Positions 8,175 to 59,250 of a stretch of 64,000 bases of DNA are shown piece by piece; the stretch's first letter is position 1, and the number at the start of each line of letters is the position of its first letter. A model generated the notes under the pieces. It saw only the letters and a list, made by a program, of their open reading frames with translations. It was not told where the DNA came from and did not search any database. Origin of the DNA: Trichoplax adhaerens (taxonomy: Eukaryota > Animalia > Placozoa). The DNA lies in the NCBI RefSeq assembly GCF_000150275.1, contig NW_002060956.1, positions 1,610,280 to 1,674,279 on the forward strand, read 5' to 3'. A program made the translations under genes and the position numbers.

Positions 8175-9374
8175 ATGAGCAAGAAGGAAGCAGCTAGTAA
8201 TCGCTCTGATCGATTCTTAGCATGTGCGGCCGTGGTGATAATTACAATAATATTTTTTGTATACTTTATAACTGTAACCATAGATTTTAAAGCTTCTTCA
8301 TCGTCTATAAAATTTTTCAAGAAGAATAAACCCTTGATACTGTTTTGGACGCCGTGGTTTTCATTTGATTGGCCAATTGCAGCTGGTAACCTTAAATGTA
8401 AAGATTACGGTGTAGAATGTATTATAACGAAAGATAGAGGAGATTATTATCGAAGTCATGCTGTAGTTTTTCATGGATCATCTTACCAAGTGAGAGATAT
8501 TCATGATTATCCTATACTTAGAAGCCGTCCCTATGGGCAAAAATGGGTTTATCATAACTTAGAGAATCCAATGATTTCCACATCCTTGACTAACGGTCAT
8601 CTACCTAAAGAGATCAATGGACTATTTAATGTGACCATGACTTATACCTCCGATTCCGATGTTATCTATCGATATGGTCAGGTAGTTCCTGGCCAATTTA
8701 GGGATGGTTTTGATCCTAACCGCAATTATGCTCAGGGCAAGACGAAGCTAGTTGCATGGGCTTCTAGTAAATGTTATCCTGAAAGAACTACGTTTATAAA
8801 TCGTTTAAGTCGGCTGATGCAAGTTGATAAATACGGCAAATGTGGTAATTTATCATGCCCCAGAACTAAAGGTTGTTGGAAGAGGTTGGGTCGACAATAT
8901 AAATTTTATCTCAGCTTTGAAAATAAAGTTTGTAAGGATTATGTCACGGAGAAATTCTATGCCAATGCTTTACTCTACGATATGGTTCCTATTGTGCTAG
9001 GAGGAGCCAATTATCAAGACCCACAAGTGGCTCCACCAGGATCGTATATTAATGCGTTCGATTTCAAGAATATTGAAGAATTGAGCCAATATATTCTAAA
9101 AGTTGATAAAGATGATAGCTTATATAATCAATATTTTCAATGGAGAGCCAATTATACCATTGTACGGATGAAAATGTCAGAAGCATTTTGTGAATTATGT
9201 TACGATATTTCATTTTTTCGACGCCAAAAAATTTATCATGACTTGACAACATTTTGGAGTACTGATGAAGAAAATTGTGTAAAATATCCCAAGTCAGGAA
9301 ATTCCAAGATATCTACCCAATTTAAGTACTACGCTACGAAATCCGATAGTTTGGCTAATCGTGGCCGTGTCTGA
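8175..9374 (+). CDS. Alpha-(1,3)-fucosyltransferase, GT10 family, intronless type II membrane protein
   Basis: First ATG at 8175 (the ORF track starts at TTG 8100). N-terminal signal anchor FLACAAVVIITIIFFVYFITV; motifs ILFWT, AVVFH, RPYGQKWVYHNLENP, FNVTMTY, and the alpha-1,3-FucT motif YKFYLSFENKVCKDYVTEKF, followed by VPIVLG and YFQWR. Confidence 0.93.
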   Translation: MSKKEAASNRSDRFLACAAVVIITIIFFVYFITVTIDFKASSSSIKFFKKNKPLILFWTPWFSFDWPIAAGNLKCKDYGVECIITKDRGDYYRSHAVVFHGSSYQVRDIHDYPILRSRPYGQKWVYHNLENPMISTSLTNGHLPKEINGLFNVTMTYTSDSDVIYRYGQVVPGQFRDGFDPNRNYAQGKTKLVAWASSKCYPERTTFINRLSRLMQVDKYGKCGNLSCPRTKGCWKRLGRQYKFYLSFENKVCKDYVTEKFYANALLYDMVPIVLGGANYQDPQVAPPGSYINAFDFKNIEELSQYILKVDKDDSLYNQYFQWRANYTIVRMKMSEAFCELCYDISFFRRQKIYHDLTTFWSTDEENCVKYPKSGNSKISTQFKYYATKSDSLANRGRV

Positions 9375-10577: not shown

Positions 10578-11509
10578 CCATCTTGAGGATTGTGCGATGA
10601 GCCCTTACTTAAGTCTCCATCCAGTTTCACTGTTATACTGAATCATAGACTGTATGGATGTGATTGTGCACACTATAGTCTACTCCATCGTTTACCATTT
10701 CTATATTGTATCCTATAGTAATCGATGATCTACTGGCTAGGTATTGTATCAGCACTGATTTTTCCAGCTCCAACATTGCCAAGTTGAAGCGTCTATAGAA
10801 ATAACTATAGTCAGGATGGCTGTCTGCGTTGCACTCCTCTAAGCGTCGTCGTCTTCGTCCCAGTTCTTGATAATTCATTTATACTAGCCGCTACTACGCT
10901 CGCCAGTAGCAGTTTCTTCTTTCTCGATTTCGATGTCTATAACAAGAGACTTGGAAGGGAAAATCTCAACAGAACCTACTGAGAACAGTGTTTAGAGTAT
11001 TGTAGCAGGATAGCACTAAAGTTGGCCTGGTTTGACTGCATGATAGTTATCCTGGATCGATTTTACGATCTTAACTAGTCTATCATTGATTTACCAAAAC
11101 ATCGGATGCGATGACTTACGTAGTGTAGAATATTATTTCATTGATTGATTTCCATTGAAACTGCATTGCTGCTTGTACCAAGTTGGATCGTTTCGACATC
11201 CTCGTTGGTTTATTTGCCTAGTCAAGAGAGAGATTTGGTTTTGTAAACTAGTCTATATAAATTAGGAAGCTGTTGATATATTTGGATGACTGTATCGCTT
11301 CTGTGTAGTGCTTAATTTAGCAATTTCGACCACGTTGGATGTTATCCAGTCCAATTAAATCATCCATTTTTACTGGCTATTTCCTGGATTGTTGTTGTTC
11401 TTGACGAGGAAGTTACTAGTGGACGTCAATCAGTCAATCGACAAAATAATTTAGATTTCCCTTTCATTTTATTTTCAATAATACGATCTGGGTACAACAC
11501 AAAATAATT

Positions 11510-14500
11510 ATGCTTTTGCTACGACAGATCGTTGTTTTGGTCTTATTATCTTCTTGGCCAATCGCATCGTTGAGTAAAGAGTCGAATGTTCAATGGTGGG
11601 CTGTTCAGTTGAAAGAAGACAGCAATAGAATCAAAGCTACTTCAGTAGAGTATCTAGACAAAGTAGCCATCGATATTGCCAGCCAATATTCGTTGAAACT
11701 CTACGGTCGTATTGGAGAATTAGCTAACTACTATCTATACTATTCATCAGTGGATTCTCATGCTGGCCATAGTGTATTGCAGCTCAATCAGAAGTTACAG
11801 AATCATCCTTTCATTCAATGGCATCAGCTACAAGAGAATCTAGTTAGACATAAACGACAAGTTGAAAGCCCTATAAACTTTCCTGATCCATTTTATCCTG
11901 ATCAATGGCATCTGGTAAGGGCATGATCTTTTCTATCCTTTACTATAAAATTAAAGAATGTTACTTTCAGTTAGATGGCATCCGGTGCGAATCATCTCTC
12001 TCTTTCGTTAATGAGACTGCACAGTATTCCAATCAATTCGATAAGAAAGTTTTACATTAATCTGACTTTTTTTCTTGAAGAGAATCTACTACTTTATCTT
12101 ATTGACATCATTGGGAAATGATAGAGGAAAAATTTTACCTTTAACCCTCATCTAGTTTTTACGTCTTATTGAGTGTAGCACTCGTACTTCCATAATGCTG
12201 CTAAACAAGTTACCGCATTTTATTTAAGCGCGATATAGTTCAGAAATAGAGTAAGTAGTTTAGTTTACAATAGTGCGCTTTTACCTGGAGTACTGTTGAT
12301 TTCAAACTGTACTCTCTTACCTGTAGTCCTTCTATGATTGGGAGACTCGGCCCAAAGAATGCTTTGGGATCAATACGAGACATACTGTAGTATAACACAA
12401 GTTTTCATTGCAAATATTTTATTCCTATATTTAATCTCTTCTCAATCTTACAACTGCATGGATTTACATTCTGTGAGATTATTTCTTTATTACTAACAAC
12501 TTTCCTTTGATCATAGCATAACTTAAGAGATCCAAATCATGATATTAACGTGACAAATGTTTGGAATCATAATATTACCGGGAAGGATGTCGTCGTCGCT
12601 ATCATAGATGATGGTAAGCTTGAAGCACCAGGGCTCGGTGATCTTTATTCATGTACCCTGAGTGGAGTTAAATTACATTACATAGCTCATTACTATAAGA
12701 TAGTGAAATCTCCTGGAAAACTCTAGACTATAAACTTCATTATTATTGAATGGAGAATGTAACCTCGTTCAGCACATTAGCTTCGATTACAACATTTCGT
12801 ATAATAATTGTTTATGTTGAACAGGTTTTTCTTAAAATTTCGTTATGAACAGTGAGGCACAGCACCTTACCAACATTTACAGTGTACAATTTATAGTACA
12901 TTTATAGTACTTTTTGAGAAAGCAATTGTAATGATTAGCTTTATAATCATAGATATAAGTAGAATCCCACAATGAACTTTTCTATGATCGTTAATGCAGT
13001 AGCTTGATTTAAGAAACAAACTATAAAGTGCAATTTCCTGGAACAGTAACAGTCTCTTGAGCGGGACCGTTATCCACCTACCGATTGCAGATAATGATTT
13101 TAAATCATCAAATCTAGTTTACCGCTATATTTTTGTGCTGGTTTTGTGTTAATTATGCAATACTTTGTTTATTCATTGTCAACTGTTTGTTGAAATAACG
13201 ATTTACCTTCTACTCTGATGGGCGTAGGTGTTCAATGGAAAAATGAAGATCTAGTAGATAATTATGTAAGTGGAATTTTGCATACTGCTGCAATTAGTGA
13301 GCATGACTGCTTACCTTATCAAAATATGCGTTATGGTCGTAATAGAATACTTAGCGTCCATTATTAGATTTAGCTGATGGATGCCTGTGACTGAATTAAT
13401 ACAACATTTGTGTAATTTAATGCCTTAAATTCGATCTTAACAAATAGTTACTATAACTCTTGTCGCGAAGTTGATAGTATTTATTATAAATGGGATTAGA
13501 TTTAAAAGTGTTTTTAACTTTGTTGATAAATTAGGTCTGTAGTGTAGCATTGCATTTCCTACGATCCAGTTATAATTGTAGTCTTGCTAGGACAACATGT
13601 AGCCAAAATTATGAAGCAGTCAGTTGCAAACTATATTGTGAATATACTGCTACTTTCATCTATTGATAAAAATTCTGATGGTAAACTAATAGGAGCCAAA
13701 AGGGAGCTGGGACGTAATCGATAATGATGACGATCCGGTACCTGCATTTGCATATCCACAGACTAATTACCATGGTACTAGGTACTGAGTAAAGTAAATT
13801 AGTTGTTAATCACTGCAGATTATCCTTAGATTTTTATACGCATTTTTAATGCAATCGTAAGGCTTTTTCTACCATAATCTTCAATGATAAAATCTCATTG
13901 TAGATGTGCTGGTGTTGCTTCAGCAGTAACCAATCAATACTGTGGTGTGGGGGTAGCTTATGGATCAAAATTTTCAGGTGCATTAAATTTCGGCATCTAT
14001 ATGCGTTATACTACTACAAATTCAAATCAATAGCTAGTTATATCATAAAGTTTCGAAATCAGGCTATTTAGCTTTGCTACCAATTGCAACTACGAGTATT
14101 TGTTCTATCTCTCCACAATGACTTTGCTATTGCAGTTTAAGTAATGGAATAAATTACAATCTTTATTTCTTGTATAGCTTGTATTTTGTAAAGATAGTCC
14201 TTAGTATTGCAGATCTTGCACAAGTGTGCATGCGATGTTTAAGCTCTCTTTTTTACAACAAAAGTAAATATTTTAAACAAGTTATTAATCTGGCTTCTTT
14301 TCGGCAATCTCTTAGCTATACGTTTACTAGATACGACCACTACCGATGCAAAAGAATCCGCCGCTTTCAGCACTAAATCACAAACCAATGATATCTACAG
14401 TTGCAGGTTAACAGAATTTTTTTAATGCATTCTTTATTAACTGCACAAGTAGTCTTGCACTGGCCATGGCACACAGGTGCTATTTTCAATTCATAGATAC

Positions 14501-30300: not shown

Positions 30301-32973
30301 GAAAAATGAAATTGTATAGTTCGGCTTATCTTTTGGCTAATGAATATTTCTACTATTGATATCTAATCAGTTCTGTAGATCGACTATATTATATCATAGG
30401 CTACAAGAAGGACGACTCTTCAAAATCATTAGACATACACTAATAACTTACTGTGTATAAAATAGATCTTTGTCATTATGCCTTAAAAAGTACGGTGCTA
30501 TTGATTATACGAGTAAATTGTGCGTATAAATGTATACCAGGAAGTAATAGTAACCTGTTCAACAGAATTTCTTGTCGTGAATCACACTTGTACCTTACTG
30601 ATCGCCAAAAGAGTTGACACCTTACTGCAGTCCTCAGTTTTATTTATAACCTACATGCTATTACTACTCTTTGCTCAATCTGATTATATCATAAATAATA
30701 CTTCATTAATATAACTGGAGTAGCTAACGGTAAATAATCAAAACATTAAGAATTATTGAAGATATTTTAATGGCTTACCCGGATATTCATTCTAATAATT
30801 ATTTATAGTAATGTCTGAAATTGAAGCAGTCTTCTTATTACTTAATAAGGGTATATTTTATAAATTAGGTTTGTTGTTTATGGTACATTTAGGGTGATTT
30901 TAAATTTGTATATGTTATGCCAGCTATTCGTATCATGTTAATTTTTACTTACAGTTGCAACCATCTCGTTTTGGAAAATTAGTATGATGCTACGCTATCA
31001 CCTCTTATAAAATTACCATAAAAAGTCAAAAATAGCTGTAACTTACGTATAATTGCGTTACAGATTACAAGTATAACTAACTACTCCTGTCTCCACATTC
31101 CGGTAAGGTTAAAATTTCCTAAATATTTTAGTAGCTGGAGTCAAGTATGCTGCCCTCGTGGTTGCAGCATTCCGTATTTCGCTACAATTGGCATTTACTG
31201 TATAGGTTCAAACTGTAGGCATTATACAAATAGGAAGTTGGTATAAGATAAAAGAAGTAAATTATGCAACATTAGCAAATTTCGAAAATGCATGCTTCGC
31301 AAATTTTGCAGGTTCATAATCATTGAAAACAATATGGTGTGTCTATGCGCCCACTCATTGGCGTTTAGGATAAATAGTGCTATACAAGTACAATAGTACG
31401 TTGTTGTATAGGGAGCATGGCAGGATAATGAGAGCAAGATTACGCACTCACTAAAATTTGATGAATTTAGAATTCAATTGTTTACTTATTAAAGTTGTTT
31501 ATGCGGATAGTTTTATTAATAAATAAATAGTAGTAATTCTATCTCGTGCATGAAATGCGAGAAACTTTGCTATGATTACTGAAAAGTAGCTTAAAAGAAG
31601 GAACGGTAAGAAATTTATCTATTGCCATAATTGTTAGCTAAAGGGAGTATCGTAATCAGGTAAATAGTAATTAATCTCATGTATAGCATGTATCGAAGTA
31701 ACCTAGCCAAAGATGGCACGCTAAATGTAATATTAAGTATAAAGCTTAAGGTAAAGCATTACTATTACGTAGTTGATTTACATGACCATGCATCATTCAA
31801 CTGTATTGAATGTTGTCTGGGAATGCTAATGACCATGAGGAACACTAGGTCTGATGAACAATTCTTTTCTACTTTTTAATAAGTCAAAACGTCTAAACAC
31901 TTGCCTTGCGTTCATTTCTTCTGATCATGTAAAAGACTTGTGATTGATGATTATTGCGTTGACGCACATTTTTTTTATTATGAACGTTACGTGGCATATC
32001 ATGAATTATGCATGAGGTAAAGTAATGTATAATTATGTATTATGCGTTAATGTGTAGTATTGTACTATAGCACAGTACTAATTTCTCAGGCCATGTTGCC
32101 GTAGGGTCCCTACCGTGCCGAGAATGTCCATGGATACTTGTGGTGTATATCAATACGGTATCATATACAGTAATATGTAGTGCGGTGTACTATAGTTAAT
32201 AGGAATTTGTATTTTGCAAGATTAGTTTCGATAATACAAACATGTTATATTTTTTCTTCCATCTCTACGACTTGGAAACTCATCTCTACAGTATACTACT
32301 AGACAATCATGTCAAATGTTTTATATTACTGCTGTGGATAATATCGCTCTTCGATCTACAGACGTTAATCTTTATGGGAATGAAGTGACATAGAATTAAT
32401 TTAATTCATCGAGACCATATAAAGCTCTTTCATGTTTGCTACAGTATATGCACACTCATGCAAGTAGGATGACATATGATAAAAGCGGTAAATGATAGTA
32501 CTGTAACTAGGACTGACTGTAACTGTAATAATTAATTGCTAATTAGTAATACGTACAACTGCGGTCTTTGCACGTACCGTAAAACCGTATCGTATTTATA
32601 CCGCGACGTATTTCTCCAATGATCAGTTCTTAAGGGTTCCAAAGTCGAAATCATCAATCAACGCTATATAATACACCGTGAATGAATATCAGTAGTACAA
32701 GAACATTTTCCCCTGCAATTAGTACAATCACTATCAGGCAAATTCAAAAGTTATAATTTCTTTACGCGGTATACGTGTTTTTCAATGTAATACTGGAACC
32801 ATCACACACCTAATAGTATTTAAAAATTGAGGTAGCTTATTGAAATTTGCCTTATTAACAAATAATGCGAAATTTAATTTTATTCCAAATGGACCTACAG
32901 TAGTTGACTTAAGCCATCTCATTTTGCATATAATTAGGAAGGAAGAGAAAAAATTATTGGATCGTTTACAAGT

Positions 32974-33546
32974 ATGAACTCTAACAATGATATCGATGAT
33001 TTGGATTATCTGGTTGAGTTTCCTATTCGTGATACTTCGGAAGATTACGTTGGTATAGAGAATTATAGCAATTGTAATTATGACCCACCACTCTACCACT
33101 TTATGGAGATTCGTTCAGAAAATTCCGACTTTAATAACAATATTGCAGATATTTCACGAGAGAAGGGAAATAAAAGTAAAGATAAAGTATCTGATAAGGA
33201 CAAGTTTGCAAGGTTTGGTCTATGTGATAAGGTTTTAGAAAATATTAAAGTGCCCGACCTAAATAAACTATTGCGTGAAGAGCTGAAAATGCCACCTGAT
33301 GAAATTTTACAAATCAAAGGAAGACGACGGCTACTTAAAAATTGTAAATCAGCTAAAAAGAGTCGTAAGAACAAGACGGATAAAGTTAAATGCCTAGAGG
33401 ATAAATTGGAAGATGTGCTACAAAAATATCATCAACAACTGCAGGAGGTTATTAATCTTCGAAAAGCAATTCGTGAAATAAACGATGTAAATCGCACCTT
33501 AATATGTTGGATTGCATTACTATATGTGCGAACTAATTTACGATAG
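32974..33546 (+). CDS. Maf-like bZIP transcription factor, intronless CDS, divergent basic region
   Basis: DKVLENIKVPDLNKLLREELKMPPDEILQIKGRRRLLKNCKSAKKSR aligns to the Maf extended homology region plus basic region ([36 protein letters not shown]). It is followed by a ~6-heptad zipper and preceded by an acidic N-terminus. Confidence 0.82.
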   Translation: MNSNNDIDDLDYLVEFPIRDTSEDYVGIENYSNCNYDPPLYHFMEIRSENSDFNNNIADISREKGNKSKDKVSDKDKFARFGLCDKVLENIKVPDLNKLLREELKMPPDEILQIKGRRRLLKNCKSAKKSRKNKTDKVKCLEDKLEDVLQKYHQQLQEVINLRKAIREINDVNRTLICWIALLYVRTNLR

Positions 33547-38954: not shown

Positions 38955-39404
38955 TTATATGCTGATCTCCAATTTCAAATTCTCATCCGCTAAGTGTTCG
39001 ATCTGTTGAAGCTTCAGCGGCTGCGGCAGCCTAGGATCTCTTGTAACAGTACGAATTTTTTGGATTTGTAGTCGAAGTTTCGCAATGCATTTGGCATCTT
39101 CCTCCCTTTTTTCGGAAGACCGCTTTTGCCGCAGTTTCGAGTTTTTAATATTTTGATTCTTCTTTCGGATATTGCGAATCAGATTCCGTCCAGGTTTCCT
39201 AAGTTCCATCGGTATCTTACGTAGGATATCATTATAATATTTCACTCCTTCTTCTGCTAACTCTTCAGCCGTGCTCCCTGATGTAATGACTAAGGTCATT
39301 CTTAATTGGAATTCTTCATCTTGAACGATGGGTTTCACCCTGTCGTCCATAACATAGTCGACTATGTTGTTCAGATCTTTACTTGGAGAATGGTTAAGGG
39401 CCAT
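38955..39404 (-). CDS. Divergent CNC/Maf-type bZIP-like protein, intronless CDS
   Basis: STAEELAEEGVKYYNDILRKIP..NLIRNIRKKNQNIKNSKLRQKR resembles the CNC domain plus basic region ([40 protein letters not shown]). Short zipper. Clearly paralogous to 40952-41470. Confidence 0.65.
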   Translation of the reverse strand: MALNHSPSKDLNNIVDYVMDDRVKPIVQDEEFQLRMTLVITSGSTAEELAEEGVKYYNDILRKIPMELRKPGRNLIRNIRKKNQNIKNSKLRQKRSSEKREEDAKCIAKLRLQIQKIRTVTRDPRLPQPLKLQQIEHLADENLKLEISI

Positions 39405-39623
39405 TACTTCAATGTTTCCTAGTCCAATGGGCGATAACTAACAGTATCGACTTGCTACTTAATTAATCATCAAATAAGGAGAAGCTTTCGGGAGCAAATC
39501 CACCTCAGTTCTTCATCCCAATCCACTTTGATGTGTCTGATCGGCAAAACAGTCTTACTTGCTGTTCTGTAGTACAGTACCGTACCGAACTTGGGCTACA
39601 AGTCCAGTACTGTACAGTGTACA

Positions 39624-40951: not shown

Positions 40952-41470
40952 CTAATTAAAGCTACTCCAAAAATCATAACGATGATTCGCAATCATATCA
41001 AGCACCATGCGAAGCGATGATTCGCAATTATAATTCAACACGGTATGATTGATATTTTCTATGAGTTGTTCATATCTTTTGACAGTGTCTTGAAGATTTG
41101 TTCTTTCATGAGATGACCGACGTCTTCGGTTTCTTGAGTAAGAACGGCTCTTCTTCTTTCTCCGCATTTTGCTAATTAGCATTTTAGCGCTCTTTCTTTC
41201 AGCCTTTGGCATTTTCTGTAGCAATCTATTGCGTACTTTAGTATTTTTATCAGCCAATTGATCGACAGTAAATTCTGTAAGCAAGTATATGCTCGATTTT
41301 AGATAGGCTTCGTCGTCGTCCAAGACTGAACCAGACGGCAAATCGTTCCTTTGAGGATTCGAGGCTTCGACAGTTGGCGAGCTGGGGTCATTTTGAATAG
41401 CACAATCGCTGAAAATCTGGCCTAGTTCCGGGTACCAGTCATCATATTCGCTATTGCTTTTGCTAGCCAT
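40952..41470 (-). CDS. Divergent CNC/Maf-type bZIP-like protein, intronless CDS
   Basis: First ATG at 41470 (MASKSNSEY). EFTVDQLADKNTKVRNRLLQKMPKAERKSAKMLISKMRRKKKSRSYSRNRRRR is followed by heptads LQDTVKRYEQLIENI. Acidic N-terminus. Confidence 0.7.
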   Translation of the reverse strand: MASKSNSEYDDWYPELGQIFSDCAIQNDPSSPTVEASNPQRNDLPSGSVLDDDEAYLKSSIYLLTEFTVDQLADKNTKVRNRLLQKMPKAERKSAKMLISKMRRKKKSRSYSRNRRRRSSHERTNLQDTVKRYEQLIENINHTVLNYNCESSLRMVLDMIANHRYDFWSSFN

Positions 41471-41617
41471 TTTCCAAGACAGAATAACTATATTTCTAGT
41501 TATCCTCGTAAACTTCAAAATTTGGGAGAAGGAATAGAGTCTTACCGCACCCTTTTTCAGTTGACACTTTGGAGATGGCTCTCAACTAATAACTTTTGAA
41601 CGCAAAAGGAACCGGTT

Positions 41618-43431: not shown

Positions 43432-46400
43432 ATGGCTAGGCAAAGATTAATATACCTCGTATTTATTGGAATTACTTATTTGATGGCTTTACCTTTGGCA
43501 AATACGTTGTTGAGAGTAAAAATTGGTAAGATCATAGTTTAATTGTAATTGCACATGATATACGAATTTAAACAGCAATCAGCATATAGAAAGACTTTGC
43601 TAAAATTATTGTAAAACGATTTACAATATATTAGGTGAAATACACTTATTTTGAATCGAAATCATTTAGAGCACAGTGCTTGCTATTATGAATTAGACTC
43701 GTTATCTGGTCTTTAATTTCTTAATGGTCCTGACCGCTTATTTGCTTAAGATACGAATCTGTTTAATCGAAGATAGTGATATTTGTACTATTACGATGAT
43801 TATATTGCAATAGATCATTGAGTAAAAATAGTGTTACCCTTACTTTCAATTGATGGCCAACTGATAGGTTTAATAGTGCCATATGAAGCCGTCGAGATCG
43901 GAGATACTATGAAATCTGCTGAAGATTATATCAATCGCATCTTATTTGCCGATAAAATTAATGTAAGCTATTCAATTGTCTATGCAAATATCTCGGACCC
44001 TGTGGATAATGTTGTGAAAGGTATGCTATTCTAATTAGCACTATAATACGTTAGATTCGTGTGCCAATAACATACTCGATCAATAAATTGGACATTAACC
44101 ATAACTGTACTATAATCTTATACTTATAACTACTAATCGTATCATACCATAATGGATATCCTTGAAATCCATGTAGAAGTTCACGCTTTGAATATAGTTG
44201 TCTGACAGGGTTTATAAACTATATTTCCATATTTAGGGTGTAAAGTAATGCAAGATGGTGTCATAGCAGTAATTGGACCGCTAGCTGATAACATGGTGGA
44301 ACAACTTCAATGGATTTTCTCCTCTGTACACATACCCAATATTGCGCCGTTAGCATCAGACGTGTCCAATTCTAGAAGTTCCAATTTTCAATATCTTATA
44401 CGTTTAGTACCTCCACACAGTGTGATGGTAGAAGCTGTAGCGTCTATTTTCACTAGTTATGGCTGGAATAAAGCTGCTCTACTTGGATCAGACACAAATT
44501 TTGGTAAACATTTATCGACAGTATCCATTACTTTTAATATGTATTTCTCTAGAAAAGCCATATAGTAGAGCTGAGTGATCTTAAATGTAAATGTAGAATT
44601 AACTATGCAAGATGATTAAGAGCTGAAGAAATTGTGATAGTTAACTGTAATTATAATTATCAGTCGCTAAATGTTCAGATTGACTGTAAATTGCTTAGGC
44701 ATCAAATCGTTGACGGAATTTACAATCCTTGCTTTGAAAAACCGTTGGAAAATATTAAATTTTGAGCTATTTAGTATCATGAGCAATACTTCAACAGATG
44801 TTACGTTGGATGATCGGCTAAAAAGAATTAAAACTTCAGGTATTAACTCCAACTTGGGTGTTCAGTCATATCTTATTTTGTGTAGATACTAGAGGATGTA
44901 CGGTGTTACCCAACTATATGTCTCGATGATAGTCTTTCAGACTGGTTCCTTTTAATTCTCAGTTTAGCAAATTAATACATTAATTAAAAAAATAGGAGCA
45001 AGAATTGTAATATTAGCAGCGGATTCTCGACAAGCAATGAATGTTATAAATAAGGCTAACAAATTATCTATGCTTGAAAGTGGATGGGCTTGGATTCTTT
45101 TAGTTGACGTCGCTGATAAGGTAGTGAGTGATATTGTAACGTCCAAATTGTTACAATTTTATGCTCTTAATGATCTTTATAAGATAGTACTTTAACAATG
45201 TTAGTGCCATAGTAAGTATACCTTATAGTGCTTTTTGATTTGCATTCATATTACGGTGTTAATATTAGGATGGTTTCAAGCTAGCTTTCCCTGTATACAG
45301 TGATGGATTATTGGTAGTAACACAGACGGCTGGTAAGGGGCAACTATACGATGATGTCATTGGTCGCTATCCAAATTTACAGGTAGTGTAGGTAACAAGT
45401 TCAGAATGCTGCATTTGTTAAGCAAATCTGCTACAAGTACTTTTTTATTTGTTACCATAAGCATAAGGAACGAAGCATAGTGTCGTATAATTTAAAAAAT
45501 TAAGTACCGAACCATAAAATTTAGAATTAGTACAGCTTTCTTATTTCTATAGCCGATCCTTTTGAAATACTTTGATGCTGCATTAGCTATTGCTTATGCG
45601 GTCAATAACCTACTCGACGATGGAGTAATCATCCAACCTGAAGGGATGAATTGTATAAGAGAATCCGTTGATCCGTGGCAGCATGGCAAAATTCTCTTAA
45701 AACGCATTAATTACGTTTGTATCAAATGCATCGGCTTAAAAATTTTATATAGTTAGATGAAACTTCTGACTAATTTACCTGTTAGTTATGCCATATGAGG
45801 TTTCTCTCAAATATTGATTGATATCTTTCGTTTTATTTCTCAAGGTCTTGAGCGCTGGTAATGAGATCACTTATGATAGCGTGTCTAAATTTCCGTTCGC
45901 AAGTAGTCTATATCCACCAAATGCGGCTTATGAGATATTTAATTTTCACTATCCGAACTGGATAAAGGTGCTAGCTTTGGGCAATATGATGACTACATAA
46001 GAACTCAAAGCATGTCATAATTTAAACTATTTTCCATATAATACATATATTAATGATTACCATCGCTGTAGGTTGGTAAATGGACAAACGTTCAAAGATT
46101 ATTTCTAGACAAGAATAATACACGATTTTTGGGTCAGTCCTCGATTATATCAGATAGCGGATCTGCTATATTTGGAAAACATCTAATCGTGACCACAGTT
46201 ATAGTATGTCATATTATTTTTTTATCAATACCGCTATATGTGCTTGTTCCCTTACTTTACATCGTTGCATATAGGAGGAACCATTTATGATGAAAAACAA
46301 CAAAACAGGAAAACTTTCAGGATTTTTGGTCGAGCTACTTGAACAGTTAAGTTTAGATCTTGGTTTCACTTACACTTTACAATTTCAAGAAGATGGCCAA

Positions 46401-48655
46401 TACGGTATTCCAGAATTGACCTCTGACGGTGTAAAATGGAGTGGAATGGTTGGCTCATTAATGCGGCGGGTAAGCTCATAAGACTAATACTTTCACTAAT
46501 TACAATTAATAATAGATAGATAATTATATTTAAAGAGCAGAAATACTTAATGTAAAGTACTATATATGAACATGTATACAGCAGCAACTAAGAACTGAGC
46601 GAGCAGCTTTGCTACAAAACGTTAATATCACTACGCTTACTTGTAAGAGTATTTTTGATAATCATTATTATGTTGAAATGGTAGGAAGTAGATTTAGCAG
46701 TAGCTCCTTTGTCAATTACCAAGGAACGTGAATTGGTCATTGATTTTACAATGCCGTACTTGGAGAATGGTTATAAAATGTTAATGAAAAGACCTGAGTA
46801 TCATTCTCCGTCAGTCTTTCAATGTTTTGCTCCATTAAGACCGTTGGTTTGGTTGATGATAGCGATCGCGATATTATTAATTTCCGTAACAGTAACTTGC
46901 ATTCATTACTTTGGCCCGAAAGATTACGTCAATGAGCAGTTACATTTATTACCGAATTATCAGTACGGTGGCTTACCTTCTGAACAAGATATTCGAAATT
47001 GGGTCGAGGACAACAAGGCAGACATAAAGGCATTAAATCTTAGTAATAGTGTTTGGTCTACGTTAAGCGCATTTTTACAGCAAGGCACTAATTACAATCC
47101 AAGATCACTACCGTTGCGCTTCATTACTGCAATTTGGTGGTTAGCATGCACAATTATTATATCCACTTATACCGCCAACTTAGCCGCGTTCCTGACGGTT
47201 AATAGACTAGATCCAGGTAAATATATTTAAAACATGCAATTTCATTCATGAATGCGAATTTTTCATCGTTAATAGCCAGCAATGTTGCAACATTGTAAAT
47301 ATAAAAGGCAGTTGATCTTGTATGAGATACGTTGTGATAATAGATGGTTGAAAATAAAGTAATTTACTGACTGCTATAGGTAATATTGCGTAACATTTCG
47401 AGGTTTTAATCGCAGGACCATGGATAACTGATTACAGACTCCTCCAGCAGATTCCATAATTTCAGTTTAAATAAACTCGTCGCTTCTTCGAAAGCAAACC
47501 GTTAAATTTGTATTTCCTTACATAAAGATCTTCTCATTCTTTTTTTTTCAGAAATTACATCTTTACTTCAGCTATCGCAGCAACATAAAATCAAATATGG
47601 TTTACCTGCAGGAGGAAGTATACATAATCACTTTAGAACTTTAAATTATACACCTTATCCAGAGATGAGACCACATTTGAAGTTAGTCAATAATACTAAT
47701 GAAGGAATCAAAGCTGCCAAGAAGGGTGGTTTCGTTTTTCTTTATGATGCTTCTACGTTAAATTATCTTGTTACTCAAGATTGCTCTCTGATAACCACTG
47801 GTCAGGAATTTATCAAGTCGAGCCATGCTCTAGGCTTACCACCAAACTCTCGCTATACCACGGAGATTACATTGGGCATATTAAATCTTCGAGTAAATGG
47901 ATTTATTACAAAAGGGCTTGAACGTTGGTGAGTACGGTGTATATTATGAATTATCAATTCTGGTGAATGTTGTCAGTCTTACATTTAAATTGAGCTCATT
48001 AACAGAGAATTACTTTATTGAAATAGATATTATAGAAACTTCATATTTTTATTTTATTTGCGATGTGTAAGCTGGTTTTAATGTAATTTTTTGTTCAGGT
48101 ACGGATCAAAAAGATGTCAAAATGCTGATCAGTCACCCAAAGCAAATTATCAAACAATTGGAGTTGAACATTTGGCTGGTGTCTTCTTAATAATTCTCTG
48201 TGGAATAGTTATAAGTTGGATAATTTTAGTTATACAATGGTATATCGCTGCATACCGCAATTTCAGAAGTAAATCCAAGGGTAATATGGAACATATGGTA
48301 GGTTGATACGTGACTAAGATGATGTCTATACCGCGAGTAATTTAAATTAATTGGTCCATAAGTTTGGTATTTAATTTAAAAACTAGTACAAAGTCACTTG
48401 CTACACTCTGATATTAATATTGATCTCATAATTAATTTTATAATATATATCGATATTTTAAAATTTGCTTGTACTATCATGTTAGCAAATTACATTACTA
48501 AAACTAATTTTAGGATTTTATATAAATTTTTATAGAAATCGAAGAACATTTTAGAGGCTTCGCGTAGAAGATTTGACCTAATATTACTTATTTTAAGATT
48601 AATGAATGCCTCGGATAGCGTTGTTACCAAAAAGCAAACGGCAGTGGAAGTCTGA
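43432..48655 (+). CDS. Ionotropic glutamate receptor subunit (non-NMDA type; subfamily unresolved), 14 exons, paralog A
   Basis: Exons 43432-43525, 43868-44020, 44237-44503, 44699-44839, 44996-45120, 45269-45382, 45553-45714, 45845-45967, 46072-46203, 46275-46469, 46685-47216, 47552-47927, 48099-48297, 48536-48655. Signal peptide; ATD (GVIAVIGP); S1 (EEPF, DGQYG, WSGMVGSL, APLSITKERELVIDF); M1; pore AFLQQG; M3 STYTANLAAFLT; S2; M4 LAGVFLIILCG. Confidence 0.95.
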
Positions 48656-50496: not shown

Positions 50497-53400
50497 ATGG
50501 CTTCCAGCTTAACGTTTATCATTATGATTGCTGCTGCTGTATGGACAGCAACTGAAGCAGACTCTAAAATGAAGATAAAAATAGGTGAGCAATTTAAATT
50601 TCTTGATTTGCTATTGTGCGATAAAATTAACATTTTAACATTCTTGTAGTTTCTTTAAAGTTTGTTGCCGCTTTTGGTTCAAGCTTCTACGTTTATGCTA
50701 TATTGAATCTGTTATTAAAGGATGTTATTGCATTGGATATTAAATTTACATTCGATAGCTTTAAATATTACCAATACCAGCTACCTTAGGTGATATAAAG
50801 AAGATTTTCAAGGAATATAAATTCAAAAATTGTTGAAACGTGTATTGCAGGGAATATGTATTGTAGACTACAATTTGTAGTCCATATTCGCATGCCATCG
50901 TCATTTTATAGTATTTACATTGATCGGAAGACAAACTTGTTTTTATAACTTCCATATTTTAAACTTTCTAGCTAGTAGTTGCGGAGTCTTTACTGTATGT
51001 AATAATTGTGATACATAACAAATTGCCTAAAATTACACTATATAATCAATACTTCCTGTATTGACCAACTTGTAGGAATATTTAAATGTTAAATTTTTAT
51101 ACAGGTGTGATACTGTCGAAAGAAATTAGCAGAGTTGAGAATGCTTTGAAGACAGCGGAACATTACATTAATAGTCATAAACTGCCAATCGAAACTCAAG
51201 TCAGTTTAAACATTGTCTATGCAAATTTCAGTGATCCTTTCGACAATATGAAGAAAGGTAGCTTTATAAATTTTAGAGACGCAATGCTTATAAATAATTA
51301 ATTACTGATTGATTGCTTTGGATATTACAGAATTGGGGTCATAAATTATTTTTTATTTATTAATTACATTAATTTAATAATCTTTTGTAAGATCATATAT
51401 CATAATTGCGTTCACTTGTAGCAATGACAATTTTAATAACTAGGATGCAAATTAGTGGAGGATGGCGTCGTTGCAGTTGTCGGACCATTACATTATCATG
51501 CCGTTAGATCACTTCAATGGATTTACTCCGCGTTACAAATACCTCATTTGGCGCCGTTAGCATCGGATGTGTCCGTGGTTAGAAATCCGAAATTAGACTT
51601 TCTCAGACGTTTGATACCATCAAATGACAAGATGTCGAAGGCTGTATCATCTATCTTTAATCACTACGGCTGGAAAAATGCGGCTTTGCTAGGATCTAAA
51701 ACAGACTTCGGTAAGATTTCGTTAAAGTCCTTCAAACATCAAAGATATCACATAAATAATTCCTGTCTTGTGTGCCACTGAATATTATTGTGTGAAAACA
51801 TAGCAATAAATGACTTGTCGTATTGTTGATCAATAATGCCTTCATTTGTATAGGGGTTAACACATTGACAGAATTTACACTCTCTGCTTTGAAAAATCGC
51901 TGGAAAATATCAAATTTTGAACTGTTTCAAATCAGGCATGATTCAACTATAATGAACTTGGAAGCTCACTTATTGAGGATTAAGACTTCAGGTAATTCGT
52001 ATTATCTATGGTATCTTATTTACCGTTGATTGATTTATATTTTGTCTCTTTATCCATTATCACATTGCGTTTTTGATTTCTTACTGTTATTCTCATCTAC
52101 AGTACTACATGGATTATCTTTTCAATTCTATTTTTCATTCTTCTATTGCACTCGTGATTAGGGCCAGAAATTGATGCTAATGATTTCGATTTGTTTGTAA
52201 ATAATTTAATGCAGGCTCCAGAATAATCGTGTTAGCCACCGATATTAAACTTGGTGCAACTGTTTTAGAGAAAGCTAACAAACTGTCGATGCTTGAAAAG
52301 GGCTGGGCATGGATTGTGCTCACTGATCTTAATGACAAGGTGATTTCATTGATGAAATAAACATACTGTAATTAGATTTTGCACTTGTTAGGTGGTTACC
52401 CTTTTCAGCGTATGTTCACTTGCTCTGTATCGCGTATTACAGTATAACATAATCTTGTAATAAAATCGATCAAGCTAATTTTCATGGCAATATCAATGAG
52501 TTTTAATCTATCACCGCCCATAGAACGATTTATCTACTGTATCGCCTCAATATACCGATGGATTACTAGCTGTAGGAATAGCTGCCACTAAGGGCCGACT
52601 ATTTGATGAGTTAACGGAATTATATCCAGATCTTCAGGTATACATCATATACGATTTTAATACCTTGCATACGAGATGAGCCATATATTAGGCCAAAATG
52701 ATGGATAGTAGGCTGCTAAGGAAGTTTAAATTTCCTATTTCATCTTTCCGTTATCAATATATAGCCGATTTATCTAAAATACTTTGATGCTGTGGTGGCA
52801 GTTGCGTCTGCCGTAGATTACTTAAGGAAGGATGGAATCATTATTCAATCTGAAAGTATGTCTTGCATACATGAATTTTCAAAAGCATGGCAATATGGGA
52901 AGCTTCTTTTACAACGGATTGATCAAGTTTGTACAGCATAGATTTATAATGCATAAGCATAATTCATCATAGTAATAATTGCAATAGACGTCATAAGTAT
53001 AAGTTGAGAAAATATCATTGGTATGTCTTGAAATCATGTTATATCATTCATAATTATTTTAAGATAATTGACCCTGTTACAAGTACCCACGGGAATAAGA
53101 CGCTCTCCCCTTTTTCAACAATTATGGGTCAGTCATCTGAGAAATATGAAATATTTAATTGTCATGGCGCCGACTGGATACAGGTACTATGCTGATTTCT
53201 TGAACTAATTGATGCAGTAATTGAATAGTTACAGAATATGGGCGTAATTTACATCAAACCATTGCAGCTCTATGACTAGCAACATTATTTACTATATGTA
53301 GGTTGGCACTTGGTCGAATAATACTTTTGAGTGGAATGCTACTCTAACCTACTTTCCTGGCCGACCTCTGGTTGTACCTGATACCGGTTCGGCTTTATTG

Positions 53401-56247
53401 GGACGACATCTTCGAGTTATAACAATTAAAGTATGTATATTAATTTATTTTTGATACTGTTAATATTGCGACTTACAGAAATTGGTAATATTAAACTTTG
53501 CTTAGATAATAGATGGTATCTAAGGGTGCGATAATCAACGCGTGGAATGATCCTGAATTTATAAACTGATATCAATAATATGTAAATTTAAAATGACTTT
53601 AATTTAATGTTGCAATATTTATCAATTAGGAACCTCCATTTGTCATGATAGATGATGAAACAGGGAAACCTGTAGGAGTTATGATCGAATTACTGAAAAA
53701 GTTAAGTTTGGAATTAGGCTTTACGTACACAATAGAGTACCAAGATGATGGTCAATATGGAAGAACAAATTTGACTGCTGATGGCTTACGAGGGACTCAT
53801 ATGATCGGTAAAATAGTACGAAGAGTAAGTTAAAAGCCTGAAATTAACTATATTTAGTGCTATAGCGATAGCTATCGTTCGGAATATTCTAGCTGCTAGT
53901 GCCGTTCGTAGAGATCTTTGATCGTATAGGAATTCACTATGATAACTTAAAATGACGTTACCCTATATAGACTGGGAATGCTATATAAGCTATGTTTTAT
54001 TCCAATAGTAATAAAAATTATGTCACTTAGGAAGTGGATCTTGCGCTTGTACCATTATCGATTACTGCAGAACTACAAGAACACATGGATTTTACAGTAT
54101 CTGTTATGGAAAAAGGCATAAAAATATTACTTAATAAACCAAAATATCAGCCAATATCGATTGATCAATGTTTTACTCCCTTAAAGCCAATGGTTTGGTT
54201 CATGATCGCGGCCGCGTTGCTGTTAGTATCTGTAACAGTTACTTTTCAACATTATTTTAACCCGGCCGAATATACGAATCAACATTTAGATTCATTAATA
54301 CCTGCAAGCTTTGACTATAGCCATCTACCCCCTGAAGAAGTCATTCACCAATGGGAAGATAGTTCTAAAGAAGTTTTACAAGCTTTAAACCTTGTCAATA
54401 GTATTTGGAATTCACTGGCTGCATTTTTACAACAAGGAAGCGACGTTACACCAAGGTCTTTTCCGTCACGATTAGTTACAGCAGTATGGTGGCTATCATG
54501 CACCATTATTATATCCACTTATACGGCCAATTTAGCAGCATTTCTGACGATCAATAGACTAACTCCAGGTGAATATTTGATTGCAGTAATGGCGCAAACA
54601 CCTGCATATATATATATCCACAATTAAAATTTTTTTTTTAATTCATTATATTAATTCATTGCTTAAATTAATTGCTCTGATAGATACATGATAGTTGTAG
54701 TAAGTAATCACTTTAAATATCGAGCTATCTAGGTTAAGTATTCTACCTATATAGCTATTGAAATTAGAATAAAGGCTTCCATTAGCAATAAATTTGATAC
54801 CATAGGGTAATCCTGTATGTGGAAATACACGTGAAAATGGCATAAACTAAAAAATAAATTTTTATTAAAATTTCTCGTTATTTTAAATTAATAGCGTTCT
54901 TTATCTTTGTTTTAGAAATTACCTCTTTAGTACAATTGTCTCAGCAGTACACAATAAAATATGGCGTCCTTAAAGAAGGAAGCACTAACAACTATTTTAA
55001 CACATTAAAGAGCTCGCCTTATGCCGATATGAAACCATACCTTCACTTGTTTAATAATATTACTGAGGGAATCAAGGCTGTTAAGCACGGTAAATTTGCT
55101 TTTATAGCTGATTCAACTATATTAAGCTATCATGTTGCTCGAGATTGTTCGATCATGACTGTTGGTGCAGAAGCTCTTATCGTGGGTCATGGTTTGGGTT
55201 TACCGCTTAATTCACCTTATACCAAGCAACTATCAGAAGCTATATTAAAGCTTCGAATGAATGGTTTTATAAAAGATAAATTAAAGATCTGGCTCAAGTA
55301 TGATCATTTGTACATGTAGCCGCTAGTGAATTTAAGTAGTTTAAATTCTGTAGTAATTTTGCATTTTTATTAAGTACCATAAAATTGCTTAGACATATCT
55401 TTACTTTCGAGAGAATATACATATACTAGTTGATATTTTTTCATATTAATGTAAATTCTTACAGATATATGCGAGCTGTGCTTTTAGCTAATAAAATTTA
55501 ATGTTATCTAGGAACCGGTCTAACCCAAAATTATGTCTTTCACCTAATTCGAACTCAAATTCTGGTTTCCAGACTATCGGGGTGGAACATTTGGCAGGTG
55601 TTTTTTTGCTAATTGGTAGTACAATCGTCGTGAGCTTTGCTATTTTAATGACGCAGTGGGTGTTCGTAGCTTACCAAGACGGCAAAAAAATTGCGCATCA
55701 TAATAGGCAACAAATGGTGAGTTAGTGTAATTATTGAAAAATGATATGTGATCGGTGTATTTTTGATTATATAGGACTAGTGTACCCAAGCGTATATAAA
55801 TACCGCTGAAGATGTCTAGTGCACCCATCGCTCAATTTGCTTGTGTACCTTACTTGTACTTTTTTACTAATAATATCTACTGTAATATGCACATACACAC
55901 AAACACACACACAAAATCTCTTTATATAATATAGATACCAGGTGCTTATGATTTGATATTACCAATATCATAATTGAAAAATATACCATAGTAATTATCA
56001 TGATACTAGTAAAATGCGATTGCAGTTGTCTTGAATGAAATGTTGATTAAATTAGCGATGTAATATAGCTTATGCTGTAATATATGAGTATCTGTGCTTA
56101 ACATTTGCTCTACAATGGTTTTAGAATTTTAAATACGTCTATCAAGCTCTTTATGGACGATTACATCTTATAATTAAGATCTTAAAATTACGATATATCC
56201 ATCATGGTGGCATTTTACGAAGTGAGAGTAATGGAATAAAAGTCTAA
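50497..56247 (+). CDS. Ionotropic glutamate receptor subunit, 14 exons, tandem paralog B with a degenerate ligand pocket
   Basis: Exons 50497-50584, 51105-51257, 51444-51710, 51854-51991, 52215-52339, 52524-52637, 52765-52926, 53064-53183, 53302-53430, 53630-53824, 54031-54568, 54916-55297, 55512-55716, 56125-56247. Near-identical exon layout to paralog A; AFLQQG, STYTANLAAFLT and LAGVFLLIG present; no internal stop seen. Confidence 0.94.
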
Positions 56248-56858: not shown

Positions 56859-59250
56859 TTATTCAACAACTTTGATCAAATGAGCTGATTTACTAATAGC
56901 TCCAGCTGTTTTTCTACTCTTACTATCGAGGGCCTTTTTAGATACAGCTGAACGTTTTTTGGATAATACGTCGCCATGTGGTGTAAGTATACTGTCACTA
57001 TGGCGTTCAACCTTAACTTTCGCTGCTGGGTTTGGTAGTTGATTTCGCGTCGCTAACGTAGCTTTTATCGTCGCTTTATTCTGGTTGTTAGTTTCTTTAC
57101 TACGGTTATTTAAGTCAGTCACTAAATGTGGTTGCGCTGGCACATCGTTTGGTTGATGTATTTGCAAAGTCTGATTCTGTGTCCATTGTGAGACACTGTC
57201 CATGAACTCTTTGCTTATAGCTATACCAGGTTGAACATTATCACGATCAGGAGAAGCTTCTTCTTCTGAAGCCATAGCTGCTTCTTGGAACATGGTCATT
57301 GCCTCTAAATTTAATGCACAAACGCCACGCATAAAAGCTTTTTTCATCGTTTCTTCATAATGTTGTCTTTCCTTTTGCATTCGAGCAATTTCAGCTCTAG
57401 AGTCTTCATATTTCCTAGATAGCTAAAATAAATAAATGTAATATTGAAAAATTTGACGTGAAATCTCTTTTTACTTGCGATACATCTGCATGATTGATAA
57501 AATCAGGCTACATCGATGGACATTGGTCTTACTGCGGCTAACTTTTGTTCATATTCTTCTGTTAAAGCCATACATACTTCTTGTGCCCTAGCCTGTCGAT
57601 TACATTAGTATTGAATTTATAAATGAACGATGTATTTGAATATGTCGGTGATTTATTAACAATATAAATACTGAGATCTACTTCAGTTATAAGTACCTGG
57701 CAAGACTTTTCTACTCGCTGTCTCCATTTAGCTTCTACAACTCCATGCCATGCAACCCATGCACGTCCCGCGATAGTTCGACGATAATGTTTAGTAGCTA
57801 ACTTAGTAGCAAATGCTTCGCGCTTTTTATCAAATAAGTGCAATTTCCATTTGCAAAATTGTTGAGATAATGCTAAGCGTTCACGCTGTGAGATGAGAGA
57901 AAGGAAATTGTTTTAATAGATATTTATTTTTGCGGTGATAGTTCTATGTACGATCTATACTTATAGTGTCTACTACATATTCTTTGATTGCTGAAGTCAT
58001 GCCACAATTTGATAAATTTTACTAAGGCTATAATTTTTATTCTTACTGACCTGTTTCTCTAATGCCTTGGTTAGATCGGATACAACACAGTCTTTTCTCT
58101 GTATTGAGTGTTCGTATGTGGATAATAATTCTTTTAAACTTTCAATCTCGCTGTTATATTTTTCTATTTCAATCACATGTCTGTTTGTAATTCAGATTAT
58201 TATATTAGTTAACTTTAACTAGAGAAATTATTTTATACTTAATTGTACGATTAAACTACGTATCATGAACGTTATATACCTTTCTTTTTCCTCTTTGATC
58301 AACTCTTTATACTTACTTATAAGTCCTAGTTTAGATTGAGTGAATTCAGCCTGGAAAGATAGGTAAAAATCTTAGAATTTACTAGGTAGACTTAATGAAA
58401 TATGCTCTAGCTTAAATGATTTATAAGATCAGTATGATAGCCTATTAATATTCGTACCAATATATTTCTTTTAAAGTCAAGACTCCAAGAATTCATTTGA
58501 TTTTCTAATCTAGCTAAATCTGCATCAATTGATGGTGATTGCGCTTGACTTAGATTAGATAGTATCGAATTCTGACTATTTTCGCTATCTTCATCGCTGA
58601 TTACTGTGACGAAACTCTTTTTAACACGTAAATTTTGTTCTAGAAGCAATAGAAATAATATTCCTCAGGCTTACATTCTTCGCAAATGTTATTGACAATT
58701 TCCTGTATGTTGCTATCGATCCATTTTTTAAATGGGGTAATTTTAAAATAAGCTTGATTTTTACCCTCGTCTTCATCTTCAGGATCTACGAAGTGGCGAA
58801 TAACAGTTTCTTTTGGTGATGTATGATACCGTATATTTGTCATCTTTTCTGCAAGATTACTCTTGTCTTCTTGCTTATCATCGCTAGCCAATAAAAATTA
58901 TGTGGTTAATCATCACTTGAACATAATATCTACCATTCATTTATCATAGGGTAAAACTGCATTGCCACGATAATAATTGAAATCGTACAGCATATAACAA
59001 ATTACTACGGAGTAGAGATGATAAACTTGTTGATATTTGAATATACAAAAAGACAGCTAGTATCCTATCTAGCATACATTAATCCGTTGCTTTTATGAAC
59101 TAACGGTACATTAGGGGTAACAACAGCATAGCGCAATAGTTCATCATATTCTTCTTGTAAGCGCGAAGAAACAGAACTTCCAGCACTATCTTCTGGTAGT
59201 AGAACGCTAGAAGATAGTTCATCGCTGCTATTTCCATCGGCAGCAGCCAT
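56859..59250 (-). CDS. POC5: Centrosomal/centriolar protein POC5, 8 exons
   Basis: Exons approx. 59078-59250, 58765-58883, 58458-58639, 58280-58350, 58051-58180, 57697-57885, 57533-57592, 56859-57422. N-terminal [22 protein letters not shown], Sfi1-like centrin-binding Trp repeats (FCKWK, AWVAWH) and the POC5 box [25 protein letters not shown]. Confidence 0.94.

Follow-up and report, generated by a model that had tools for sequence, protein, structure and literature searches.

The DNA analysed here is a stretch of 64,000 nucleotides from Trichoplax adhaerens (contig NW_002060956.1, forward strand), called the window throughout, and it contains two homologous genes for ionotropic glutamate receptors (iGluRs), one of which, GluE2alpha, carries a leucine at the position of the agonist-binding Arg485 of GluA2. 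The window is AT-rich (about 33% GC) and of eukaryotic type, with short introns. On the + strand, paralog A occupies about 43.4-48.3 kb. Paralog B, the gene in question, follows in tandem, head to tail, some 2.2 kb downstream of its sister and reaches from about 50.5 to about 55.7 kb.

The identity of both genes could be settled from database entries. The joined exons 10-12 of B are letter-for-letter the protein P0154, named TRIADDRAFT_30612 [Trichoplax adhaerens], and exons 10-12 of A correspond to P0006, named TRIADDRAFT_30609, partial [Trichoplax adhaerens]; according to the database record both proteins sit on the same contig. Supplementary Table 2 of Singh et al. 2025 (PMC12226733) lists TriadG30612/XP_002116224.1 as GluE2alpha, a receptor formerly named GluE6 (Commun Biol 8:994), and TriadP30609 as GluE2beta. 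In the same publication GluE2alpha alone is described as being without R485, and GluE2beta as being without the acidic residue located four positions after the Q/R site. These states are the ones found in the window, where B has no R485 and an acidic Asp at Q/R+4 and A has Arg and Asn. Paralog B is GluE2alpha (TRIADDRAFT_30612 / XP_002116224.1) and paralog A is GluE2beta (TRIADDRAFT_30609). The two share one 50% cluster in a large representative database, in which the partial model of A (P0006) is the representative. The public models are fragments: TRIADDRAFT_30612 comprises 373 amino acids from exons 10-12 only, exons 1-9 and 13 being unannotated there, and TRIADDRAFT_30609 comprises 356 amino acids, again from exons 10-12 only, and also excises 12 codons inside exon 11.

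Exon-by-exon alignment of A and B yielded 13 homologous coding exons in each gene, with no stop codon in any of them, separated by 12 introns that are identical in position and phase and all bounded by GT-AG. Exon 13 ends at a conserved GT donor in A, in B and in the orthologue described below, and therefore a further C-terminal (14th) exon must exist; a similarity search did not locate it. The sequence-only reading, a model's earlier annotation of this DNA, had credited the gene with 14 exons, of which 13 are thus verified and the last is implied. Queries taken from the window were single exons, the only multi-exon proteins used being the database entries P0006 and P0154. The exons of A, placed by alignment to B, extend over 43432-48297 (43432-43525, 43868-44020, 44237-44503, 44699-44839, 44996-45123, 45269-45382, 45553-45714, ~45845-45967, 46072-46203, 46275-46469, 46685-47216, 47552-47927 and 48099-~48297).

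Exon 1 of B (50497-50584) contains the start codon and a signal-peptide-like MASSLTFIIMIAAAVWTA, and aligns to exon 1 of A, with which it shares the position of its phase-1 GT donor. Exons 2-9, defined by exon pairs and junctions against A and collinear with them, encode the amino-terminal domain within 51105-53430 (51105-51257, 51444-51710, 51854-51991, 52215-52339, 52524-52637, 52765-52926, ~53064/53100-53183 and 53302-53430), the acceptor of exon 8 being ambiguous between ~53064 and 53100. Exon 3 matches the Pfam ANF_receptor family PF01094 (2.4e-11, 43.7 bits, cut-off 25.4). The first half of the S1 segment of the ligand-binding domain is encoded by exon 10 (53630-53824), as indicated by Pfam PF10613 and the paralog alignment, and its second half by exon 11 (54031-54568; residues 61-239 of P0154), which continues through M1, the pore loop and M3. 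Exon 12 (54916-55297) encodes the S2 lobe and was matched by phmmer to the ligand-binding domains of GluK1/GluK2 (E 5e-14), and exon 13 (55512-55716) encodes the pre-M4 linker and M4. The interval 53630-55297, which had been singled out from the letters alone, is exactly exons 10-12, that is S1, M1-M3 and S2.

Loss of the carboxylate-clamping arginine

Arg485 of GluA2 binds the alpha-carboxylate of amino-acid agonists. Exon 11 of B opens at 54031 with EVDLALVPLSITAELQEHMDF, in which alignment and codon reading place a leucine codon, CTA (54073-54075), at this position, whereas exon 11 of A opens at 46685 with EVDLAVAPLSITKERELVIDF and has the arginine codon CGT (46727-46729). In a phmmer search against all PDB chains, the segments plsitaeLqehmdf of B and plsitkeRelvidf of A aligned without gaps to pltitlvReevidf of GluA1/GluA2 (E 1e-27 for B and 2e-30 for A). 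The canonical agonist-site arginine is thus missing from B and replaced by Leu, and the contrast with an Arg-bearing sister in tandem was read correctly from the start; the host does lack neurons, as that reading had only supposed.

The replacement is rare and more than a chance observation. A six-frame search of the T. adhaerens genome with Pfam PF10613 found 14 iGluR genes, and 13 of them encode Arg at the site, with CGN or AGA codons, B being the sole exception. The site is covered by 209 of 220 fetched proteins, and these comprise 206 with Arg, 2 with Leu (B and its orthologue) and 1 with Lys. Of 204 animal iGluR genes, 97% have kept the arginine (Seljeset et al., bioRxiv 10.1101/2023.08.03.551817). 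Docking to Trichoplax GluE1alphaA gives it the largest attractive energy term, for glycine and glutamate alike (Table S3). Among the non-classical iGluRs, 94 of 122 proteins retain Arg485 together with the acidic residue 705, and the remaining 28 have lost at least one of the two (Ramos-Vicente 2018). The description of the gene as unusual has to be tempered by those 28 proteins and by the earlier publication of the R485 loss. The loss itself is not new, because Singh et al. 2025 already state that R485 is lacking in the GluE2alpha orthologues. At the codon level, both leucines are encoded by CTN (CTA in B and CTG in the orthologue), and the CGN codons that most paralogs use differ from these by one transversion. 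A single CGN to CTN change removed the carboxylate-clamping arginine from GluE2alpha.

The rest of the protein is largely retained. The two-lobed ligand-binding domain is recognised by PF10613 (Lig_chan-Glu_bd) with 34.4 bits on exon 10 (cut-off 30; 51.6 bits for A) and 24.3 bits where exon 11 begins, and in the six-frame genome search the S1 scores of B, 35.1 and 27.1 bits, were the lowest of the 14 paralogs. The pore is intact: exon 11 matches Pfam Lig_chan (PF00060, 7.6e-25) and contains QQG, with the Q/R-site Gln at 54430-54432 and the +4 Asp at 54442-54444 by motif reading, and the M3 gate motif STYTANLAAF at 54514-54543, while the M4 exon aligns to A and to the orthologue. The Q/R-site Gln, the M3 motif and the M4 exon are present in A and B alike, as the sequence-only reading had stated when it listed pore, M3 and M4 among the elements kept. 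Among the agonist contacts, the equivalents of Tyr450 (53756-53758, within exon 10), Pro478, Ser480, Ser654 and Thr655 are all kept, the last two within the Gly-Ser-Thr of positions 653-655 (54978-54986); exon 12 also contains the Asp705 equivalent (55110-55112), an acidic residue aligned to the Glu of GluK1/2, and a His at the 732 position (55188-55190).

Two further segments are altered. In place of the helix that reads (K/Q)W(S/T)GMVG in other paralogs, B has RGTHMIG (53789-53809) and the orthologue has KWKNLIR, and the PDB alignment of exon 10 stops ahead of this helix; the earlier comparison of WSGMVGSL in A with GTHMIGKI in B was accurate. The 'KPF' that follows the DF motif is 'VSV' in B. 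An AlphaFold2 model of P0154, built from an alignment of 66 sequences, reached a mean pLDDT (predicted local distance difference test) of 89.8 and a pTM (predicted template modelling score) of 0.75, and its confidence falls only in the loop and helix that follow Tyr450 (residues 31-50). The top Foldseek matches of the model were chains of GluK2 and GluA2-4 covering ligand-binding and transmembrane domains, with probability 1.00 to GluK2/GluA2. An arginine was also observed two residues past the Tyr450 equivalent, as Y-G-R in B (53756-53764) and Y-H-R in the orthologue (contig L029, ~2360-2380), the corresponding residues of GluE2beta being Y-G-I. It may be a coincidence or a basic residue relocated near the pocket, in a stretch where the alignment is ambiguous and the model least confident.

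An old leucine in a constrained gene

A word search with exon 11 of B, bounded by a length window to exon-size entries so that full-length relatives were outside its reach, returned one close relative, P0001, in Logan contigs of runs SRR30664516/7. The Logan contig L029, of 4.4 kb, carries a gene with the exon layout of B (amino-terminal-domain exons, S1, S1-M3, S2 and M4), all exons open, and about 50% identity to B. Its motif at the site is VPLTITPSLEKEIDFTVSIM, with Leu (CTG) in place of Arg485. Both proteins share the derived 'DFTVS' (DFTVS(V/I)M), a stretch that reads 'DFT(M/K/I)P' in A and in the other paralogs. In exons 3, 5, 6, 9 and 12 the L029 gene resembles B more closely than A, exon 5 being 70% identical to that of B against 48% to that of A. 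Per-exon trees were built from the paralogs of the T. adhaerens genome plus the orthologue, the placement of B in the epsilon clade being taken from Singh et al. 2025. A clade of A, B and the orthologue was supported with 100/98 and 96/99; in the exon 11 tree B and the orthologue joined with 94/93 inside the clade of 100/98, and in the trees of exons 10 and 12 the inner branching, with the orthologue beside B or beside A+B, was not resolved. Downstream of both B and the orthologue there is an exon of a convergent neighbour gene, with 62% identity over 141 amino acids (E 2e-48). The L029 gene is regarded as the positional orthologue of B because of the exon 11 tree, the identities in the amino-terminal domain, the shared derived residues and the synteny. 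The leucine at the Arg485 site therefore predates the split of two placozoan lineages and has been kept since.

The ratio of nonsynonymous to synonymous substitution rates (dN/dS, by NG86) between B and the orthologue, which the sequence-only reading had put forward as a check, lies at 0.11-0.41 in every exon; dS is at least 1 and saturated, and hence the values are only a rough sign of constraint. The lowest belongs to the S2 exon (0.106). When A and B were compared with five outgroup paralogs in a relative-rate test, the excess for B was mild in exon 11 and absent from exons 10 and 12. As this test revealed no strong acceleration, the notion that the ligand-binding domain of B is decaying as a whole was dropped. 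B is not a decaying copy, because its dN/dS is 0.11-0.41 and its rate only mildly exceeds that of A; GluE2alpha is intact and under purifying selection.

The convergent neighbour is represented in the window by its last exon (56862-57422, - strand), about 1.1 kb downstream of B, which has no Pfam match and a coiled-coil or centriolar-type look. Logan runs SRR30664515-17 (L029/L030/L031) also hold a GluE3-like exon, P0002, and come presumably from another placozoan lineage. Elsewhere in the window, the + strand carries a single-exon GT10 fucosyltransferase gene at 8094-9371 (PF00852, 7.8e-55), an exon for the pro-domain of a subtilisin-type proprotein convertase at 11450-11923 (PF16470, 1.7e-14) and a Maf-type bZIP exon at 32938-33543 (PF03131, 1.7e-8). 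The open reading frames 38958-39437 and 40955-41581 of the - strand contain basic bZIP-like stretches, with no Pfam match.

Possible roles of a clamp-less subunit

GluE2alpha is an intact and conserved pore-forming subunit deprived of the carboxylate clamp. It probably works as a channel subunit, with an agonist pocket to which alpha-amino acids would no longer bind in the canonical manner and with high affinity. Classical gating by glutamate or glycine would therefore be lost or much weakened. Within heteromers the subunit may act as a partner that binds poorly or not at all, or else it may answer a ligand that needs no carboxylate clamp. A probability of roughly 0.55 is assigned to this reading as a whole. 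Between its two branches, that of the poorly binding heteromer partner is slightly more likely than that of a new ligand class. The kept Asp705 and lower-lobe contacts would mildly favour a pocket that still binds something.

Several points weigh against it. A literature search found no functional data on GluE2alpha, and among the relevant papers only Singh et al. 2025 name GluE2, the gene accessions appearing in no main text. Singh et al. (PMC12226733) predict glutamate specificity from the residues that contact the ligand side chain, so that residual amino-acid gating is possible, and the evidence of expression rests on the statement in that paper that single-cell RNA (scRNA) data exist for both genes. 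The Arg of the Y-x-R in both alpha orthologues could in principle compensate for the lost Arg485. Pocket residues are alike in B and the orthologue at about 5-6 of 9 positions, which is not clearly above the background of about 50%, and the saturated dS leaves the dN/dS values rough.

The amino-acid gating just mentioned could persist at reduced potency if another basic residue, such as the Y-x-R Arg, or backbone amides bound the carboxylate. This is rather unlikely. The glutamate prediction of Singh et al. speaks for it, as does the lower lobe, in which Gly-Ser-Thr and Asp705 are of the glutamate type and match GluK1/2, and the Y-x-R is common to B and the orthologue and absent in A. Nevertheless, Arg485 dominates the binding energy of glycine as well as of glutamate in the GluE1alphaA model and is retained in 206 of 209 relatives, and the Y-x-R falls in the ambiguously aligned residues 31-50, where the model is least confident. 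The same conserved lower lobe could serve a receptor retuned in the manner of insect tuning receptors to a ligand that lacks the alpha-carboxylate, such as an amine, or to another stimulus, which was the second option of the sequence-only reading. Only the carboxylate clamp is radically altered, Asp705, Gly-Ser-Thr 653-655, Pro478 and Ser/Thr480 being kept in B and largely so in the orthologue; the S2 exon has the lowest dN/dS of all, 0.106; and switches of ligand preference are frequent among close iGluR relatives, epsilon receptors selective for GABA, glycine and aspartate having been published. Retuning on its own is nonetheless doubtful, as it comes without a candidate ligand, pocket conservation is not significantly above background, and the upper-lobe helix that follows Tyr450 has changed in a different way in each orthologue (RGTHMIG and KWKNLIR), which resembles relaxed constraint more than tuning.

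An obligate heteromer of GluE2alpha and GluE2beta, the first option of the sequence-only reading, in which the ligand-blind alpha subunit would tune gating, trafficking or the pore and the beta subunit would bind the agonist, is unlikely. It draws on the tandem, same-strand arrangement in T. adhaerens and on the adjacent gene numbers TrispH2_000861/000862 in Trichoplax sp. H2, from which a tandem can be deduced there too, as well as on the complementary pore residues, the +4 position being Asp in alpha and Asn in beta. Subunits that require a partner are well known, among them GluK4/5, GluN1/2 and the insect tuning receptors with their co-receptors, and these are precedents for such a pair. 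Cladtertia collaboinventa, however, possesses GluE2alpha and no GluE2beta, and Hoilungia hongkongensis has neither (Singh et al. 2025, PMC12226733). A word search with exon 11 of A returned GluE3-like and more distant fragments and no GluE2beta orthologue from other species; within the Logan runs containing the alpha orthologue its best match was a GluE3-type exon, and no beta-like exon appeared, which is weak evidence. All epsilon receptors characterised so far function as homomers. The obligate pair is weakened by these three observations; moreover, a truly blind subunit would have no need of the lower-lobe contacts that alpha keeps, and adjacency of genes alone is weak evidence of a complex. 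Tandem clusters are the rule for the iGluR family of this genome, where they contain most of the other members, and therefore the A/B tandem is not special: three genes lie together on C1393 (904-931 kb), one of them GluE1alphaA, three on C1414 (8739-8771 kb) and two on C1410 (1259-1293 kb), all within loci L001-L012. Over a stretch of 40 residues, the L007 paralog matches without a difference the T. adhaerens GluE1alphaA sequence given in Supplementary Data 1 of PMC12226733. Near-identical iGluR copies, L006 and L009, were also observed at distant sites of C1414, 8.74 Mb and 4.75 Mb.

Less probable still is a constitutively open leak channel, possibly inhibited by its ligand, as is the case for AKDF1 of Trichoplax (TRIADDRAFT_19383). 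B likewise has a hydrophobic residue in place of a charged contact with the ligand backbone. In classical receptors, though, losing Arg485 abolishes activation rather than causing it, and an Arg485-to-Leu change is not known to close the clamshell. A hydrophobic swap at Asp705/GluN1-D732 bypasses ligand binding, and the natural Tyr of AKDF1 produces a leak current blocked by glycine (Seljeset et al., bioRxiv 10.1101/2023.08.03.551817), but that effect was published for the acidic residue of the lower lobe, and at this position B still has Asp instead of the hydrophobic residue or Tyr of a leak channel of that type. Finally, decay of a duplicate towards a pseudogene, which might be suspected from Pfam S1 scores below those of the other 13 paralogs (35.1 and 27.1 bits) and from a public model reduced to 373 amino acids, is largely refuted and very improbable: 13 of 13 exons are open with intact splice sites, the orthologue, about 50% identical, is no less intact and gives dN/dS of 0.1-0.4, the fold is confidently predicted, and Singh et al. 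record scRNA data as available for the gene. What weight is left beyond these specific readings falls to heteromers formed with other epsilon subunits, or to mixtures of the readings.

GluE2alpha among known receptors

Placozoans have no neurons, yet they possess 14 iGluR genes and respond to glycine and glutamate, and what each of their receptors senses bears on the pre-neural origin of chemical signalling. The conserved loss of the clamp in one subunit amounts to a natural experiment on how new ligands or ligand-independent roles are acquired by iGluRs, shifts of which the insect ionotropic receptors (IRs) and AKDF1 are earlier cases. The value of GluE2alpha lies in its being a well-defined target for electrophysiology, with a full exon map, evidence of an old leucine in a constrained gene and an argument against an obligate alpha/beta pair.

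The gene is the one that Singh et al. 2025 (PMC12226733) published as GluE2alpha, with the statement that the orthologues lack R485 and that the consequences are unknown. To that description are added here the 13-exon map, the codon-level change, the census of the genome, a diverged Leu-bearing orthologue with microsynteny, and the explicit tandem with GluE2beta. The best PDB sequence matches of B are AMPA and kainate receptors, which says little because full-length epsilon structures are lacking in the PDB. The nearest functionally characterised relatives are the epsilon receptors GluE1alphaA, gated by glycine, and GluE3alpha, gated by D-serine and glycine (PMC12226733; PMC13648236). They have in common with B the long M1-pore loop and the exon and domain layout; in contrast to B, both keep Arg485 and work as amino-acid-gated homomers, and in the per-exon trees they fall in clades separate from A+B.

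AKDF1 offers a parallel from the same animal, in which a contact with the ligand backbone has been replaced naturally and the replacement conserved across placozoans. There, however, the acidic residue 705 is changed to Tyr with Arg485 kept, in a receptor of the AKDF clade for which oocyte data exist; B, of the epsilon class, is the opposite case. The insect IRs are reported to have been described by Benton and colleagues in 2009 as variant iGluRs that have lost one or more of the Arg, Thr and Asp contacts, presumably do not bind glutamate and serve as subunits specific for particular ligands. B resembles them in the loss of an agonist-contact residue, in its case only the Arg, and the resemblance would be convergent: the insect receptors form a protostome clade in which most tuning IRs are without an amino-terminal domain and depend on IR8a/IR25a, whereas B belongs to a placozoan, has a complete amino-terminal domain, has no known co-receptor and so is not an insect-type IR by descent. 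It may be proposed, tentatively, that GluE2alpha is an independently arisen placozoan counterpart of the insect tuning IRs, which, in a host devoid of neurons and synapses, would have given up alpha-amino-acid agonism before more than one placozoan lineage split and might now respond to another chemical class, such as carboxylate-free amines, or be gated without a ligand, alone or together with Arg-bearing epsilon partners.

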